This document shows positions 3,292 through 10,757 of a DNA stretch of 64,000 nt, in pieces. How positions within the stretch are numbered: the first letter of the stretch is position 1; every line of letters starts with the position of its first letter. The position numbers and the translations under genes are program-made. Below the pieces are notes generated by a model. The model saw only the letters and a list, made by a program, of their open reading frames with translations, had not been told where the DNA came from and did not search any database. The stretch covers positions 682,001 through 746,000 of the forward strand of contig OZ251246.1 of NCBI GenBank assembly GCA_965240325.2, given 5' to 3'. The DNA comes from Rebecca billardiae RCC1528 (Eukaryota > Protista > Haptophyta).

Positions 3292-4866
3292 CTAGCTCGG
3301 CGCCGCCGCCGGGCCATCGGCGCCGCCGCCGCTCGGCGCAGTGTACTGCTCCAGCGCCGCGTCGGCGCGGCCGGTGCTCAGGTCGCAGCCGAGGGGCAGC
3401 TCAGCGCTCGGCTTGACCCACACCGCGCCCGTGCGCAGCGCGCGCGCGAAGCTGCTCGCGCGCGCCGCGCTGCTCGTCCACACGCCGGCGGCCAGCGTGA
3501 ACCGAGCGTCTGCCGCGCGCGCCACCGCCTCCTCGTCAGTCGAGTGCTTGAGCACGCAGAGCACGGGCCCGGCGGAGGCGGCGCGCGCGATGGTCATGTG
3601 GTCGCGCACCTCGGCGAAGACGGCCGGGCGCATGAAGTACCCCACGCCGCCGAGCACCTCGCCGCCCGCCACGAGCCGCGCGCCCTCCGCGCAGCCCGCG
3701 CGCACCTGCCGCTGCGCGAGCCGCAGGCCGCTCGAGCTGACGATCGGACCCTGGCCCGTGCGCGCGTCGAACGGGTCGCCGACGTGCACGTGCGCGGCGC
3801 GCTCGGCGGCGCGCGCGACGAACTCGTCGTACACCTTCTCGTGCACGAACACCCGGCTGTCCGTCGCGCACAGCTTGCCGTGGCTCGAGAGTGCCGCGCG
3901 CACCGTCTCCTCAGCCGCCTGCGCGACGTCGGCGTCCTCACACACGATCGCGGCCGACTTGGCGGAGAGTGAGTCGTACGCGACCTTGTTGACGAGCGGG
4001 TGCGCGGCGAGCGCGGTGGAGGTGGACGCGTCCGGGCCGGCGAGCACGTTCAGCACGCCCGGCGGCACGCCCGCCTCCGCCGCGAGCTCGGCGACGCGCA
4101 GCAACGAGAGCGGCGCCTGCCGCGGCGCCCTCAGTACCGCCGTGTTGCCCGCCGCCAGCAGCGGCGCGACTTCCCACATGCCCATGAGGAGCGGGCGGCA
4201 GGTGGGGATGATGGCGGCGACGACGCCGACGGGCACGCGCGGCGACGTGTCCGGCGCGCGCAGCGCCGTGCCGTGCGTCCAGCTCGCGCCCGAGAAGGCG
4301 CGCAGCAGCGCCGCGCTCAGTGGCACATCGGCTTCTCGCACGCACGAGAAGATCTTGCCGCCGTCGAGGGTCTCGAGGGCGGCGATCTCGTCGGCGTGCG
4401 CGTCGAGCGCGTCGGCGAACCGGCGGAGCAGCGCGCCGCGCTCCGCCGCCGACATGCGCGGCCACGGGCCGCGGCGGAACGCGCGATCTGCCGCGCGCAC
4501 CGCCGCGTCGACGTCCGCCTTGCCCGCCTCGGCGACCGCGCAGATGGGCTGTGCCGAGCGCGGGTCGATGGTGTCGAAGGTGCGCCCGCTGACCGAGTCG
4601 GTTGGCGCACCGTCGATGAAGAGCCGCGTCGCCGTCGGTATCGGCGCTTTCGCGCCGCGCGCGCGCGTGGCCGCGCGCGCGACCGTCTCGAGGATGCGCG
4701 CCGCCGCGCGCTCGTCGGCGCGCGCCTGCTGCAGGGTGGACAGAGCGCGTATGCTCGGCAGGAGGCGGGTGGCGGCGTAGAGTGGCGCGGCGAGCGCCGG
4801 GGTCGCCGCTGGCAGCGCGCGTGCCAGCGGCACGAGCGGCGAGTGGCTGGAGAGCGCGAGTAGCAT
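3292..4866 (-). CDS. Aldehyde dehydrogenase family (ALDH1/2-like) protein, probably mitochondrial, with degenerate catalytic and cofactor motifs
   Basis: Motifs LFIDG..SVSGRTFDTIDP, ADVDAAVRAA, ETLDGGK, AGVPPGVLNVL, GDPFD...QGP, GYFMRPAVF and LAAGVWT. ATG at 4866 is preferred over the TTG at 4917, and the Arg/Ala/Ser-rich N-terminus resembles a presequence. Confidence 0.85.
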   Translation of the reverse strand: MLLALSSHSPLVPLARALPAATPALAAPLYAATRLLPSIRALSTLQQARADERAAARILETVARAATRARGAKAPIPTATRLFIDGAPTDSVSGRTFDTIDPRSAQPICAVAEAGKADVDAAVRAADRAFRRGPWPRMSAAERGALLRRFADALDAHADEIAALETLDGGKIFSCVREADVPLSAALLRAFSGASWTHGTALRAPDTSPRVPVGVVAAIIPTCRPLLMGMWEVAPLLAAGNTAVLRAPRQAPLSLLRVAELAAEAGVPPGVLNVLAGPDASTSTALAAHPLVNKVAYDSLSAKSAAIVCEDADVAQAAEETVRAALSSHGKLCATDSRVFVHEKVYDEFVARAAERAAHVHVGDPFDARTGQGPIVSSSGLRLAQRQVRAGCAEGARLVAGGEVLGGVGYFMRPAVFAEVRDHMTIARAASAGPVLCVLKHSTDEEAVARAADARFTLAAGVWTSSAARASSFARALRTGAVWVKPSAELPLGCDLSTGRADAALEQYTAPSGGGADGPAAAPS

Positions 4867-5423
4867 GGTTTGTGGCCACGGGGAAGTGGCCGAGGAAAGG
4901 GCGGAGACCGTTCGCAATCTGCGCGCCCGGCCGGCCGGGCGCAGCGGCAGGGGGGGGACGGGTGGAATGGGAATGTGCCGGCGACTCGGCGAATAAAGCG
5001 CCGAAGCACTTGAGGTTCACAAATTCCACCAGGCCACTGATAGATGGGTAACACGCCTCTGCCGCCGCCGGGATTGGCCGACCGAGCGCGTGTGAACCTT
5101 CACTTTCAAGCCGAAAAGAATATGGGGCGATCGCGCCCCAATGAATGTTGAACGCGTGATCCAAAAGCAAGATCGAGTCATGGGGATTCGACCCTGATTT
5201 CATCAACCTCTTGAGTAGCTGTAGAGTAGGCCCATCAAAATTAATGCCGTTTCGCTCCGTTCGCCCGCCCGACTTTCATAATAATGATCGGCTCAGAGCT
5301 TCGGCGCTCTTGTGTCCGATGGTGTTCCAACTCATGATCATTGATGATGATTTACAATAACTTTACTCACCGTAGCCATCATCTTGCAGCCTGCCTAGCT
5401 GACAGCTGTGTACGCGCGGGCCA

Positions 5424-8146
5424 TCACTGCCCCGGCGGCGGCGCGCGCGGCGCGGGCTGCCCGCGCGGCCGCCCCTCCGCGCCGCCGCCTTCGCGGAGCA
5501 CGGCGCTCGCGCGCTCGAGCACGGCGCGCGGGAAGCCGGCGACGCGCGCCGCGTGCAGCCCGTACGAGCACGGCGCGGCGCCGGGCTCGAGCGAGTAGGT
5601 GAACTCGACCGCCTCGTCGTGCGCGAGCGCGGGCTCGGCGTCGGGCGTGCTCGGCGGCGCGCCGTCCGCCCCGCCACCCGCCGCGCCGCGCCCTGCGCCG
5701 CGCTCGACGGGCTTGGCGCCCATCTGCGCGGCGGCGACAAGGCCAGGCAGCTCGTTGGCGAGCTCAGTGAGTGCGTGGTAGTGTGTGGCGAAGAGCGCGC
5801 GGCAGCCGACGCTCGTGGCCAGGTGCTCCGCGACCGCGCGCGCGATCGCCTCGCCGTCGTCCGCGCTCGTGCCCCGCCCCACCTCGTCGAGCAGCACGAG
5901 GCTCGCCGCGCTCGCGTGCCGCAGGATCTCGGCAGTCTCGCGCATCTCGACGGTGAAGGTGGAGAGACCGCCGCCGATGTCGTCGACCGCGCCGACGCGC
6001 GTGAAGACGCGGTCGGCGAGCGTGAGCGTCGCCGCGTCCGCCGGCACGAAGCACCCCGCCTGCGCCATCAGCTGCACCAGCCCGAGCGTGCGCAGGTACA
6101 CAGACTTGCCGCCGGCGTTTGGGCCCGTCAGAATCAGCATGGCCGCCGCGCCGTCGCCCGCGCGCGCGGCGGCCGCCGGCGCACCGCCGCGCGCGGCGGG
6201 CGAGCCGGCGTGCCGCGCGTGCGCCGCCGCGTGCGCGGCCGAGCCGCCCAGCGCCGCCGGGTTGGGCACGAACGCGCCCGGCGGCAGCAGCCGCTCGACG
6301 ACCGGGTGGCGGATGTTCTCCGCGCGCAGCACGTGCGCCGCCGGACCGGGCTCGGCCGGACCGCCGCCCGGCTCGGCCGGACCGCCGCCCGGCTCGGCCG
6401 GAGCGCCGCCCGGCTCAGGCGGCGCGGGCAGGATGTGCGGCCGGCAGTACCCCTCGTCCACGGCGGTCTGCGCGAAGCTCGCGAGCGCGTCGACGCGCGC
6501 GACGAGCGCGCACGCCGCGCGCGCCGCGTCGGCGTACGCGTCGATCTCGCCGAGAAGCTTCTCGAACGCGGCCGTCTCGAGTGCGACGATGCGGCGCGTG
6601 GCGCGCGCGAGCGCCGACTCGCGCGCGCGCAGCTCGTGCGTGCTGAAGCGACGCTCGCGCTGCGCGGCGCAGGGCAGCTCGAGCCAGCCGTCGGGCAGCG
6701 CGCCGCCCGCCTTGCCGCCGCCGAGCAGCCGCAGGCCCGCCGCGCTCTTCACCTGGATGAACCGCTCGCCCGTGCGCGCGGTCGTCACCAGCCGCAGCGG
6801 AATCTGCGTGCGCGCCGATTCCAACACTTCGAACTCTGCGAGGTACGCGCGCGCCGCGGCGGCGCGCGCGCGCTGCGCCGAGAGCTCGGCGCACGCGACC
6901 GAGGGCGCGATCACCGCCTCGCCGCCCTCGCCGCCGATCCGCGCCGGCGGCTCGTCGACGAGCGTGCGGCCAATCAGATCGCTCAGCTCGGACAGCGCCG
7001 CGCGCGCGCGCGGCTCCAGGGGCGAGAGGAGGGCTGGCCAGTCAGACGATGGCGGCGGCTGCTGCTGCTGCTGCGGGTGCGGCTCCAGGGGCGAGAGGAG
7101 GGCTGGCCAGTCAGACGATGGCGGCGGCTGCTGCTGCTGCTGCGGGTGCGGCTCCAGGGGCGAGAGGAGGGCTGGCCAGTCAGACGATGGCGGCGGCTGC
7201 TGCTGCTGCTGCGGGTGCGGCTCCAGGGGCGAGAGGAGGGCTGGCCAGTCAGACGATGGCGGCGGCTGCTGCTGCTGCTGCGGGTGCGGCTCCAGGGGCG
7301 AGAGGAGGGCTGGCCAGTCAGACGATGGCGGCGGCTGCTGCTGCTGCTGCGGGTGCGGCTCCAGGGGCGAGAGGAGGGCTGGCCAGTCAGACGATGGCGG
7401 CGGCGGCGGCTGCTGCTGCTGCGGGTGCGGCGGCTGCTGCTGCGCCGCCGCCGCCGCTGCGCTGGCGGCGCGGGCGGCGGCGGTGTCCTCGGCGGCGGCG
7501 GCGTGCGCCGAGCCGCCGCCGAGCCCGCCCGACCCCTCGGCCGCGCCGCGCGCGCTCGGCTGCGCGCCCGCCGCAGCGGCCGCCGCGGCCGGCCCGAAGA
7601 GCGCCCGCCTCGCGCGAGCGTCGTCGCCCAGCGCGGCGGCGCGCGCGCCCTCCAGCGCGGCCTCGATGCGCGCGAACGCGCGGATCGAAGTCCGGATCGT
7701 GCCGACGCACTGCGGGCTCGCGCGGCGCGTCTGCACGCGCGTGAGCAGGCGCTCGACGTCCTTGAAGCCACGCAGCGCGCCGCGCAGCGCCGCGCGCCCG
7801 CCGTGCGCGCCCGCGAGCGCGGCGACCGCGTCGTGTCGGCTGATGACCGTTGGCCGGTGGGTCGAGGGTCGGGAGAGCCACTGGCGGAGCAGGCGCGAGC
7901 CGACCGCGGTGCGCGTGCGGTCAAGCGCCCAGAGCAGCGAGCCGCGCCGCTCGCCCGTCCGCGCGGTGCGCTCGATCTCGAGATTGCGCCGCGCCGCCTC
8001 GTCCAGTTCCATACTGTCCCCGAGCGCGTAGACAGTTGGCGGCCGCAGCTGCGGCATGCGGATTCGGCCCGCTCGCGGCGCGTCGGCGGTGCTGAGCAGG
8101 CCGTCGGCGTCGTCCGCGGCGTCGGCGTCCGCGTCCGCGTCCGCGT

Positions 8147-8178
<32 letters not shown>

Positions 8179-8726
8179 GAGTCGGAGTCCGCGTCGGCGT
8201 TCGCGTCGGTGGCGGCCTCCGCGCCGCGCGCGGCGTCGGCGCGCGCGCCACCGCTCGTGGCGGCGCGGCGTCGGCGCGCACGGCCTGTGGTGGCAGGGGC
8301 CGCAGCTGCGCCCTTCGCGCCCGCGGTGGCGGTGGCGTTGGGCGCGGCGGTCGTGTCGCGCGGCGCGAGCTTCTCCACCTCGTCCGCCGCCGCGGTCGTC
8401 TCGCGCACGTAGCCCAGCAGCGCGCCGAGCGCCTGCGTCGCGCGCGCGTGCCTCCCGAGCCCGAGCGCTTGCAGCGGCGCGCCGCCGTAGTGAGTGGCGA
8501 TGGCTGCGGCCGCGCGCGCCTCGCAAAAGGCGCGCGGCGGGAGCAGCAGGTAGCGCGCGCTGGCGGGGGCCCAGCTGGGCACGTCGGGGCACGAGCGCGC
8601 CTGGCCGGGCAGCAGGCAGCGCGGCACGACGCGCGTGCCCTCCTCTCCCTCGGCACTCGCGCCGCCGCCGCCGCCGCCGCCGCCACCGCCGCTGCCGCCG
8701 CCGCTGCCGCCGCCGCCGCTGCCGCC

Positions 8727-8757
<31 letters not shown>

Positions 8758-10757
8758 TAGGGCACGAGGATCTCGGCGGGCGAGATACGCGCGAGCTCGG
8801 CCGCGAGGGCGCTCGGGGAGGATGACTCCGTGGCCCACACCTCGCCCGTCGAGATGTCGGCGTACACCAGCGCGCTCGGCGGCGCCGCCGCGCTGGCGGC
8901 GCTGGCCCCGGGCAGCCCGGCCGCCGCCGCGCCCGCGCCCGGCGCGGCCGCGTCGTCTCCCGGACTTTCGGAGCCGGAGCCGCCGGAGCGGTGCGTGGGC
9001 CCGCCCGGCAGCAGGACGGCGAGGAAGTTGTGCTCGGGCGAGAGCCAGCCCTCCTCGAGCAGCGTGCCCGGCGTGAGCACGCGCTCGAGGTAGCGCTTCA
9101 CGCGCGGCCGGCCCGCGCCGTCCGCGCCGACGGTGTACTGCTGGCACACCGCCACGGAGACGCCCGCCTCGAGCAGCGAGTGGCAGTGCGCGCTGAGGCG
9201 CTGGTGGGGGAAACCCGCCATGGGCACGTTGACGACCCACTGCCCCGCGCCGGCGCCGGCGTCCGGCTCGGCGCGCGCGTCGTCGCCCACCCACACCGCG
9301 CCCGCCATCGGCGGCGCGCCCGGCTCGCGCCACTCCGCGCTCCGGCGTAACTGCCGCCGTGTAACGGTCATGTCCAGAGTCCGGCCCAGCAGGGTGGCGT
9401 CCTCAAAGTACGCCTCGAAGAAGTCGCCGATCCGGACGAGCAGGAGCGCGTGCTCATGCCGCCGCTTGTCGCGCACGTACCGCTGCAGCATGTCCGGCAG
9501 CTTGCTCACGTCGACCGTGCGCGTCGTCACCGCGACGCCGGCCGCGGCTGCGCCCGACGCGCCGGCGCCGCGCGCGCTCCGCACGCCGCCTGTCGCCTCC
9601 GGCGCGCCCGCGCCCGCGCCCATCTCAGAGTCCTCGGGGGCGAGGGCACCCGCGATCGGCTCGAGCTCGGCGTAAGGATCGCCCGCCGCATCGGCATCCA
9701 CGTCGGCGGCCCGCGCGGCCGGCACTGCCGCCCATGCGCCGCCGTCCGCGCGCTCCGCCGCCTCCGCCGCCGCCGCCGCCGCCGCCGCCGCCCCCTCCGC
9801 CGCCGGCTCCGCCGCCGCCGCCGCCGCCTCCGCCGCCTCCGCCTCCGCCGCCTCCGCCGCCGCCGCCGCCGCCGCCTCCGCCTCCGAGTGGGCGGCGGTC
9901 GGCGCGCGCCGCCGTGCGCCCGAACGCGCCGCGCTCGCGGCGGCTCGCGCGCCCGGCCTCGCGCCGCGCGTGTCCAGCTCGAACGCCGTCGCCTTCAGCC
10001 GCGGCACCGACAGGCCGTACTGGAGGTCGAGCCGATCCACGATGGCCGCCAGCAGCCGGCAGTCGTCGAGCGCGCGGTGCGTCGGCCGGAGCGCCGCGAC
10101 GTCGAGCTCGAAGAAGCGGGCGAGCGCGTCGAGCGACATGCGCTCGGGCGCGGCGCGGACCCACGGCTGCCTGAACAGCTCGCGCGCCACCGCGAGCGAG
10201 TCGGCGAACCGCCAGCCCGGCGGCAGCGCCAGGCCGGCGCGCGCGAGCTCGGCCGCGAGGAACGGAGCGTCGAACGCTCGGCAGTTGTGCGCGCACAGGA
10301 TGGCGTGCTCGCCGACGAAGTCGTGCAGCGCGCGCAGCGCCTCGTCGGCGGAGGGCACGCCCGGCGCGTGCACCTGCGCGTCCTTGAGCCCCGTCAGCCG
10401 CGAGATCGTGCCGCGCACGCGGTGCGCGGCCCCCGGGTTCACGAGGGTCGAGAAGGCTTCGCCGCTGGCCGGGTCGAGCGCGCCGATCTCGATGACGCGG
10501 TTGCGCGTCTTGGAGAGCCCCGTCGTCTCGAGGTCGAAGTAGAGGAGCCGCGTGCCACGCGCCTCCGCCGCGCCCTCCGCCGCGCTGCGCGCGGCGCCGT
10601 CGCCGCCGTCGGCTGGCGCTACCGCCGCCGCGCGCATGGCGAGGGCGTGCGAGCGCGCAAGCGGCGCGACGCGCGAGCGCACGAGGGCGGCGCGCGCGCC
10701 GCCGCGCTGGAACGAGGCGAGGGCCGCGATCATCATCAGGCGCCACGCCACGCGCAT
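5424..10757 (-). CDS. mutS: MutS1-type mismatch-repair ATPase fused to an N-terminal DEDDh 3'-5' exonuclease; putative plastid targeting; about 1777 aa
   Basis: Exonuclease motifs: YFDLETTG, AHNCRAFDAPFL, HRALDD. MutS domain I: RIGDFFEAY, PMAGFPH, RVLTPGT. Domain III: RRNLEI..GSLLWALDRT. ATPase: TGPNAGGKS, FTRVGAVDD, STFTVEM, LLDEVGRGT, FATHYH, SYGLHAARVAGFP. ATG at 10757 starts MRVAWRLMMIAALASF. Confidence 0.9.
7012..7428. repeat. 69-bp tandem repeat x6 inside mutS, encoding PHPQQQQQPPPSSDWPALLSPLE
   Basis: Unit ggctccaggggcgagaggagggctggccagtcagacgatggcggcggctgctgctgctgctgcgggtgc starts at 7012, 7081, 7150, 7219, 7288 and 7357. Confidence 0.95.

Follow-up and report, generated by a model that had tools for sequence, protein, structure and literature searches.

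Hofstatter & Lahr (2021; PMC7884376) reported that the mutS genes of eukaryotes have a third source, a cyanobacterial one, and named this type 'chloroplastic MSH1', and Sloan et al. (2024) have traced cyanobacterial-like MutS1 across the Archaeplastida (PMC12292046). The presence of this protein is ascribed to gene transfer from the plastid (PMC7884376; PMC12292046), and red algae retain a cyanobacterial-like MutL as well (PMC7884376). In Viridiplantae, including Cymbomonas, Physcomitrium and liverworts, an N-terminal DPD1 exonuclease is fused to MutS1, while DPD1-RecG fusions occur in other green algae and the Cyanophora protein bears a Mrr_cat-like tail (Sloan et al. 2024; PMC12292046). Haptophytes are mentioned in neither PMC7884376 nor PMC12292046, and a literature search for DPD1 together with MutS1 found no later paper covering other lineages. 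Here we have analyzed a stretch of 64,000 nucleotides from Rebecca billardiae RCC1528 (assembly GCA_965240325.2, contig OZ251246.1, positions 682,001 to 746,000), referred to in the following as the window, and describe a gene on its minus strand that is predicted to encode a DEDDh exonuclease and a bacterial-type MutS1 in a single polypeptide.

As judged from the sequences, the exonuclease-MutS1 fusion is present in pavlovophyte haptophytes, namely in the window, in Pavlovales sp. CCMP2436 and on a Logan contig, and it is this occurrence that is new. The cyanobacterial origin of MutS and the DPD1-type fusion are already published for Archaeplastida, and the finding mainly confirms known biology. 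For the locus as a whole we consider it highly probable that it represents a nuclear gene for a plastid-type MutS1 with an N-terminal exonuclease fusion, the latter being most likely homologous to that of the green lineage. Like DPD1-MutS1 of Viridiplantae, the window protein consists of an N-terminal DEDDh exonuclease followed by an apparently full cyanobacterial-like MutS1, has kept the DEDDh and F-x-E residues, and shows a putative organelle-type N-terminal extension and a size inflated by inserts. It differs in that it comes from a haptophyte, whose secondary plastid is red-derived, that the presequence looks bipartite and that the clamp is diverged. The same architecture is found in Cymbomonas, in Riccia and in the EukProt protein g2117.t1 (P0248), but Riccia DPD1-MutS1 has a STICHEL-like C-terminal extension that the window protein lacks. 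Note that the STICHEL DnaA_N-like match in the protein of the liverwort Riccia sorocarpa (P0252, 1864 aa; residues 1776-1855) is weak, with 22 bits below a cut-off of 27.

No stop codon interrupts the minus-strand reading frame that carries the exonuclease and then MutS1, and the coding sequence is apparently complete and predicted to be intronless. As every conserved block shares one frame, frame-shifting introns are excluded. In the exonuclease domain all five DEDDh catalytic residues match D12, E14, D103, H162 and D167 of E. coli DnaQ in the alignment. The AlphaFold model of this domain reached a predicted local distance difference test (pLDDT) value of 94.8, and the folds that matched it best were those of a DnaQ domain, of a homologue of TREX1, of RNase T, of the epsilon subunit of Pol III and of TREX2. 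A feature search of the ESM Atlas with the exonuclease yielded generic RNase_T clusters only, mostly viral, and was not used as evidence. The MutS part scores 569.1 bits with the NCBIfam MutS equivalog NF003810, above its cut-off of 480. The columns of F-x-E, of the Walker A motif GxxxxGKS, of the Walker B residues DE, of the STF signature and of the ATH histidine are invariant with respect to E. coli and six cyanobacteria, and the G-D-F-x-E element is invariant in an alignment that includes F36 and E38 of E. coli. The protein ends about 20 residues past domain V.

The cyanobacterial character of MutS had been put forward in an earlier note on this DNA, based on six motifs within 5560-9500. 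These motifs are real: all of them lie in one minus-strand frame within that span, far beyond chance expectation, and in an alignment with MutS from six cyanobacteria they do agree with the cyanobacterial consensus. The span itself corresponds to the MutS part, the whole gene extending over 5424-10757. Raw identity over 800 aligned columns amounts to 38-41% with cyanobacteria and 31-39% with other phyla, and because this modest gap separates cyanobacteria poorly from the rest, it is the tree rather than the motifs that carries the argument for the origin. In a word search with domain V, the Logan protein P0001 came first, and the named proteins among the next 119 matches were all cyanobacterial MutS with 43-49% identity. 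When each prokaryotic species was represented by one genome in a pattern scan, cyanobacteria were the five best of at least 596 confirmed relatives from the sampled genome stretches, followed among the matches listed by Chloroflexota, Bacillota, Acidobacteriota, Planctomycetota and Sericytochromatia. With residues 1-1200 of P0001 as the query, a HMMER search of 1.84 billion representatives gave as top named matches Cymbomonas tetramitiformis (RNase_T and MutS), the EukProt fusion P0248, Cyanidiococcus, Galdieria, Riccia and Cyanophora. The domain layout in Riccia is again RNase_T and MutS; the proteins from the red algae Cyanidiococcus and Galdieria are unfused, and the one from Cyanophora combines MutS with the Mrr_cat-like region.

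The maximum-likelihood tree of MutS was calculated from 58 rows and 837 columns under LG+C20+F+G4 with posterior mean site frequencies (PMSF); its rows do not include yeast MSH1, plant MSH1 or MSH2-7, and support is given as ultrafast bootstrap (UFBoot) and SH-like approximate likelihood ratio test (SH-aLRT). The window protein, P0001 and P0246 group with 100/100, P0248 is added with 97/97, and the haptophytes and P0248 are joined by Riccia, Cymbomonas and Cyanophora with 82/93. The addition of the red algae and of two unnamed rows completes an all-eukaryote clade of 12 rows (97/90); these two rows are eukaryotic, as their contigs bear kinesin, uricase and GCFC genes. The 12-row clade is sister to the Cyanophyceae (100/99), Melainabacteria and Sericytochromatia are next outside, and Phaeobacter, Sinorhizobium and E. 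coli are distant. The phylogeny places the protein as cyanobacterial and plastid-type, and together with the best matches it supports the derivation of the MutS moiety, a bacterial-type MutS1, from the cyanobacterial ancestor of plastids, as that note had proposed. On this tree red algae, glaucophytes, green algae and non-seed land plants contribute their 'chloroplastic MSH1' or cyanobacterial-like MutS1 to the same eukaryotic clade as the moiety. The unfused proteins of Galdieria and Cyanidiococcus and that of Cyanophora, although members of the same clade, are without an N-terminal exonuclease. Cyanobacterial MutS, the closest among prokaryotes by matches and tree, shares with the window protein every catalytic motif as well as domains I, II, III and V, but is shorter (about 850-980 aa), lacks the exonuclease, the presequence and the low-complexity inserts, and has a canonical domain IV.

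After the haptophyte orthologues, the nearest matches of the exonuclease half by BLAST were P0248 (129 bits), Cymbomonas (99 bits) and a metagenomic RNase_T-RecG fusion (98 bits), with bacterial matches at 87 bits or less. In the exonuclease tree of 70 rows, the haptophytes join P0248 and Cymbomonas with 97/88. Cyanobacterial, red-algal and glaucophyte MutS1 are without an exonuclease and the fusion is therefore derived; as the closest relatives of both halves are again fused genes, a single fusion event outside this lineage is most likely. The suggestion of the earlier note that a plastid-derived MutS1 later gained the exonuclease accordingly holds for the direction of the change, but the gain itself probably took place elsewhere. 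From the sequence relationships, the haptophyte fusion is most likely homologous to green DPD1-MutS1, having been inherited or transferred in its fused form. Among the matches listed from at least 8000 candidates when long proteins were searched for words of the exonuclease, only P0001 and unrelated fusions appeared, a result that is uninformative on plant DPD1-MutS1. The DPD1-like-RecG fusion of green algae is similar in that a related exonuclease is joined to an organellar DNA-handling protein, but its partner is a helicase, and the RecG-type domains fall into a separate subclade of the exonuclease tree, outside the group of haptophytes, P0248 and Cymbomonas. A protein of 1245 aa from a JGI metagenome (3300042896; P0121, locus L003, 268-4005), composed of RNase_T and DEAD/Helicase_C and named RecG by JGI, resembles these green-algal fusions; its exonuclease is 37-38% identical to that of the window, and its contig has a GC content of 70%.

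The N-terminus of the window protein has a hydrophobic start, MRVAWRLMMIAALASF, followed by a stretch rich in R, A and S, and the first acidic residue does not appear before about residue 50. The orthologue from Pavlovales sp. CCMP2436 is similarly laid out (MTARLCVMLAVIGAV...), again with a hydrophobic beginning and then an R/A/S-rich region free of acidic residues. This layout would suit a presequence of the bipartite plastid type, and we infer from it import into an organelle, be it the plastid or the mitochondrion.

In three haptophyte sequences the F-x-E element, the ATPase motifs, the helix-turn-helix region and the DEDDh site are intact. In the mechanism that we propose, the protein would be imported into the plastid (or the mitochondrion), where a MutS1 dimer would sense mismatches via F-x-E and cycle ATP. 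The tethered 3'-5' exonuclease would then degrade the error-bearing strand from a 3' end, and excision would be accomplished within one polypeptide. Sloan et al. (2024), who describe DPD1-MutS1 as being without functional study, propose such mismatch-linked excision for the plant protein (PMC12292046). For the haptophyte protein, we estimate that a repair function in the organelle, with recognition of mismatches and excision in the same molecule, is about as probable as all other roles taken together, and the diverged clamp domain and the large inserts call for caution with respect to the mechanism.

Several observations weigh against the interpretation given so far. The haptophyte rows of the MutS tree have an odd amino-acid composition and sit on a long stem (about 1.0), although composition is unlikely to have produced the grouping, as Cyanobacteria and Archaeplastida are not GC-rich. 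Deep cyanobacteria (Gloeobacter, Gloeomargarita) are missing from this tree, and angiosperm DPD1 and TREX rows from that of the exonuclease. In the unconstrained tree, the DPD1 domain of Riccia lies outside the subclade of the haptophyte exonucleases; a single clade of all eukaryotic exonuclease domains was not rejected in the approximately unbiased (AU) test (p 0.42). Constraining haptophytes and P0248 to group with the red algae costs only 0.4 units of log-likelihood (lnL; AU p 0.50), and the MutS half may have come by a red or by a green route. The older model TIGR01070 falls under its cut-off with 473.9 versus 641.7 bits, a shortfall that plausibly stems from the inserts, which split the match into six stretches. 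Pfam MutS_IV went undetected in the window protein and reached 14 bits in P0001 (cut-off 22), although the diverged segment aligns by eye, with ERRFSTHEL of the window protein opposite the cyanobacterial consensus EERYITPEL. As Pfam fails to recognise the diverged clamp domain IV and TIGR01070 remains under its cut-off, canonical mismatch repair is not assured. Finally, the low-complexity inserts could in part be in-frame introns.

A different job for the protein is doubtful, but it deserves consideration. MutS may serve as a sensor of DNA structure that aims the exonuclease either at recombination intermediates, to reject heteroduplexes or otherwise act against recombination, or at DNA of the organelle that is to be degraded. 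DPD1 is an enzyme that degrades organellar DNA in angiosperm pollen and senescing leaves, and the divergence of clamp domain IV as well as the large low-complexity inserts in the MutS core, among them a young repeat of six copies, would fit such a role. Alternatives of this kind have been given for DPD1-MutS1 by Sloan et al. (PMC12292046). The F-x-E element, Walker A and B and the signature motifs are nevertheless kept across the three haptophyte sequences, as would be expected under selection for mismatch recognition.

The origin of the fusion allows for a second alternative. Haptophyte plastids are of red-algal descent, and an unfused MutS1 from the red endosymbiont may have been fused separately to a DnaQ-like exonuclease, converging on the layout of green DPD1-MutS1. 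The red-derived plastid, the absence of an exonuclease from the red-algal proteins, the low cost of the red-algal constraint and the position of the Riccia DPD1 domain are all in line with this scenario. We nevertheless regard it as unlikely, given that the exonuclease groups with the MutS fusions of Cymbomonas and EukProt, that the order of domains is identical to that of the green fusion, and that Riccia, Cymbomonas and Cyanophora are the partners of the haptophytes in the free MutS tree. It is also less parsimonious to assume that the same two families were joined twice in identical order than that this happened once. The complete counterpart to this scenario is a single fusion shared with green DPD1-MutS1 that would have reached the haptophytes in its fused state, a green alga having been the donor or the fusion being older than the split of red and green lineages and lost from the sampled red algae, and that would act in organellar mismatch repair as one polypeptide in which the tethered 3'-5' exonuclease carries out excision. 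With all its parts taken together, we consider this a tentative proposal that falls somewhat short of an even chance.

That the haptophyte lineage acquired its mutS horizontally and directly from a bacterium, be it a free-living cyanobacterium or not, and independently of plastid endosymbiosis, is very improbable. Cyanobacteria are indeed the closest prokaryotes and the long stem softens the exact placement, but the haptophytes are nested in the all-eukaryote clade and not inside crown cyanobacteria, and they are closest to further fusions from eukaryotes, with P0248 at the reported 97/97. As for further MutS proteins of organelles, plant MSH1 is alike in concept, being an organelle-targeted MutS with its own nuclease in one polypeptide, but that nuclease is a C-terminal GIY-YIG domain rather than an N-terminal DEDDh domain, and the protein belongs to a different MutS subfamily whose published origin lies in a horizontal transfer, possibly a viral one. 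Yeast-type mitochondrial MSH1 is likewise a nuclear-encoded bacterial-type MutS1 that works in an organelle, but is of alphaproteobacterial-like ancestry. That the window gene could be of the alphaproteobacterial or mitochondrial MSH1 type, a nuclear MSH2-7 paralogue or a plant-type MSH1, all of which are MutS-family proteins with domain V and some of them organelle-targeted, can be dismissed in agreement with the earlier note, because a constraint that unites the haptophytes with the two Alphaproteobacteria, the grouping which that note had set against its own proposal, was rejected (delta lnL 88.2, AU p 0.004, with no yeast MSH1 row in the tree), because a phmmer search against the PDB gave 266 bits over five stretches for E. 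coli MutS versus 183, 172 and 164 bits for MSH6, MSH3 and MSH2 over one or two C-terminal stretches, and because Pfam and NCBIfam scans of the whole protein found no GIY-YIG domain.

Concerning its setting, the gene has a GC content of 79% in the coding sequence and of 94% at third codon positions (GC3), and that of the window around it is 72-80%. A bacterial contamination was considered and rejected in view of a eukaryotic neighbouring gene, the extreme GC3 and the introns in the CCMP2436 orthologue. By these sequence features the gene is nuclear and native to its host, a haptophyte with very GC-rich DNA and probably a pavlovophyte. The assignment to haptophytes is supported by the best named match of the exonuclease, a protein of Pavlovales sp. 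CCMP2436 with 68% identity. On the respective contig, exonuclease exons are followed on the same strand by pieces of MutS domain I, a 5.6-kb gap of N and pieces of MutS domain II; as the exonuclease exons precede the MutS pieces, the same fusion is present in CCMP2436, split by introns. The C-terminus of the public 235-aa model deviates from the family alignment. P0001 is a complete orthologue of 1261 aa on a Logan contig with 75% GC, and is identical to the window protein at 62% of positions over the exonuclease and at 54-64% over the MutS blocks.

The size of the window protein is inflated by an Ala-rich linker, by Asp-Ala and Gly/Ser runs and by an array of a 69-bp repeat (Table 1). The array sits inside MutS domain III and lengthens the protein by some 140 residues of PHPQQQQQPPPSSDWPALLSPLE. 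The orthologue P0001 lacks the array, as seen from a gap in the alignment, and it is therefore taken as a recent expansion within a conserved repair gene.

Table 1. Features of the exonuclease-MutS1 gene in the window, in the order of the encoded protein, and the corresponding locus of Pavlovales sp. CCMP2436 (positions on its own contig).
Feature	Position	Strand	Basis or remark
Exonuclease-MutS1 coding sequence	5424..10757	-	ATG at 10757, stop at 5424-5426; 1777 aa plus stop
N-terminal presequence, residues 1-72 (putative)	10542..10757	-	Direct reading and hydropathy scan
DEDDh 3'-5' exonuclease (Pfam RNase_T)	10041..10541	-	Pfam 9e-19
Exonuclease motif FDLETTG	10518-10538	-	
Exonuclease motif HNCRAFDAPF	10260-10289	-	
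Exonuclease motif HRALDDC	10059-10079	-	
Ala-rich low-complexity linker, exonuclease to MutS	9492..10040	-	Translation; GCC-type repeats at 9737-9886
MutS domain I (mismatch binding), F-x-E intact	9303..9491	-	Pfam MutS_I 2.4e-21
Motif GDFFE	9414-9428	-	
Motif RVLTPGTLLEEGWL	9042-9083	-	
MutS domain II (connector), detected in part	8754..8873	-	Pfam MutS_II 2.8e-11
Gly/Ser and Asp-Ala repeats flanking domain II	8102-8241, 8660-8756	-	Tandem-repeat scan
MutS domain III, first half (RRNLEI...LWALDRT)	7623..7997	-	Pfam MutS_III 6.4e-40, two stretches
Motif RRNLEIERTARTGERRGSLLWALDRTRTAVGSR	7893-7991	-	
69-bp tandem repeat, 6.1 copies, 98% identity	7010..7431	-	Tandem Repeats Finder; in frame, encodes PHPQQQQQPPPSSDWPALLSPLE
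MutS domain III, second half, and divergent clamp (domain IV)	6318..7009	-	Pfam: MutS_III only
Motif HPVVERLLPPGAFVPN	6261-6308	-	
MutS domain V, ATPase and helix-turn-helix	5493..6137	-	Pfam MutS_V 3.8e-64
Walker A, motif TGPNAGGKSVYLRTLGLVQLMAQ	6060-6128	-	
Motif FTRVGAVDD	5979-6005	-	
Motif STFTVEM	5943-5963	-	
Walker B	5865-5900	-	
Motif FATHYH	5775-5792	-	
CCMP2436 locus L002, MU632051.1	6439-17483		Public model: 235-aa 'ribonuclease H-like domain-containing protein'

An open reading frame of 1090 aa on the plus strand (5553-8825), antisense to the MutS gene, was rejected as a candidate; it is Arg-rich, mirrors the repeats and represents frame noise at 80% GC. Directly downstream of the MutS gene and on the same strand, the window contains an open reading frame for an aldehyde dehydrogenase (3292-4917, minus strand; Pfam 5e-102, two stretches). 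Among the matches of the representative search, P0359 (1269 aa) is a bacterial-type MutS with a LAGLIDADG homing-endonuclease intein just before domain V.

The contribution of this analysis is a taxonomic one, in that it adds an intact and conserved fused gene in haptophytes with red-derived secondary plastids, a gene that comes closest to a green alga in its exonuclease half. This provides one further data point on the debated 'green' genes in lineages with red plastids. By comparison with the family, the public 235-aa NCBI model of CCMP2436 is exposed as a truncated piece of an exonuclease-MutS1 gene. The finding also widens the choice of organisms in which DPD1-MutS1, a still-uncharacterised protein, may be studied.

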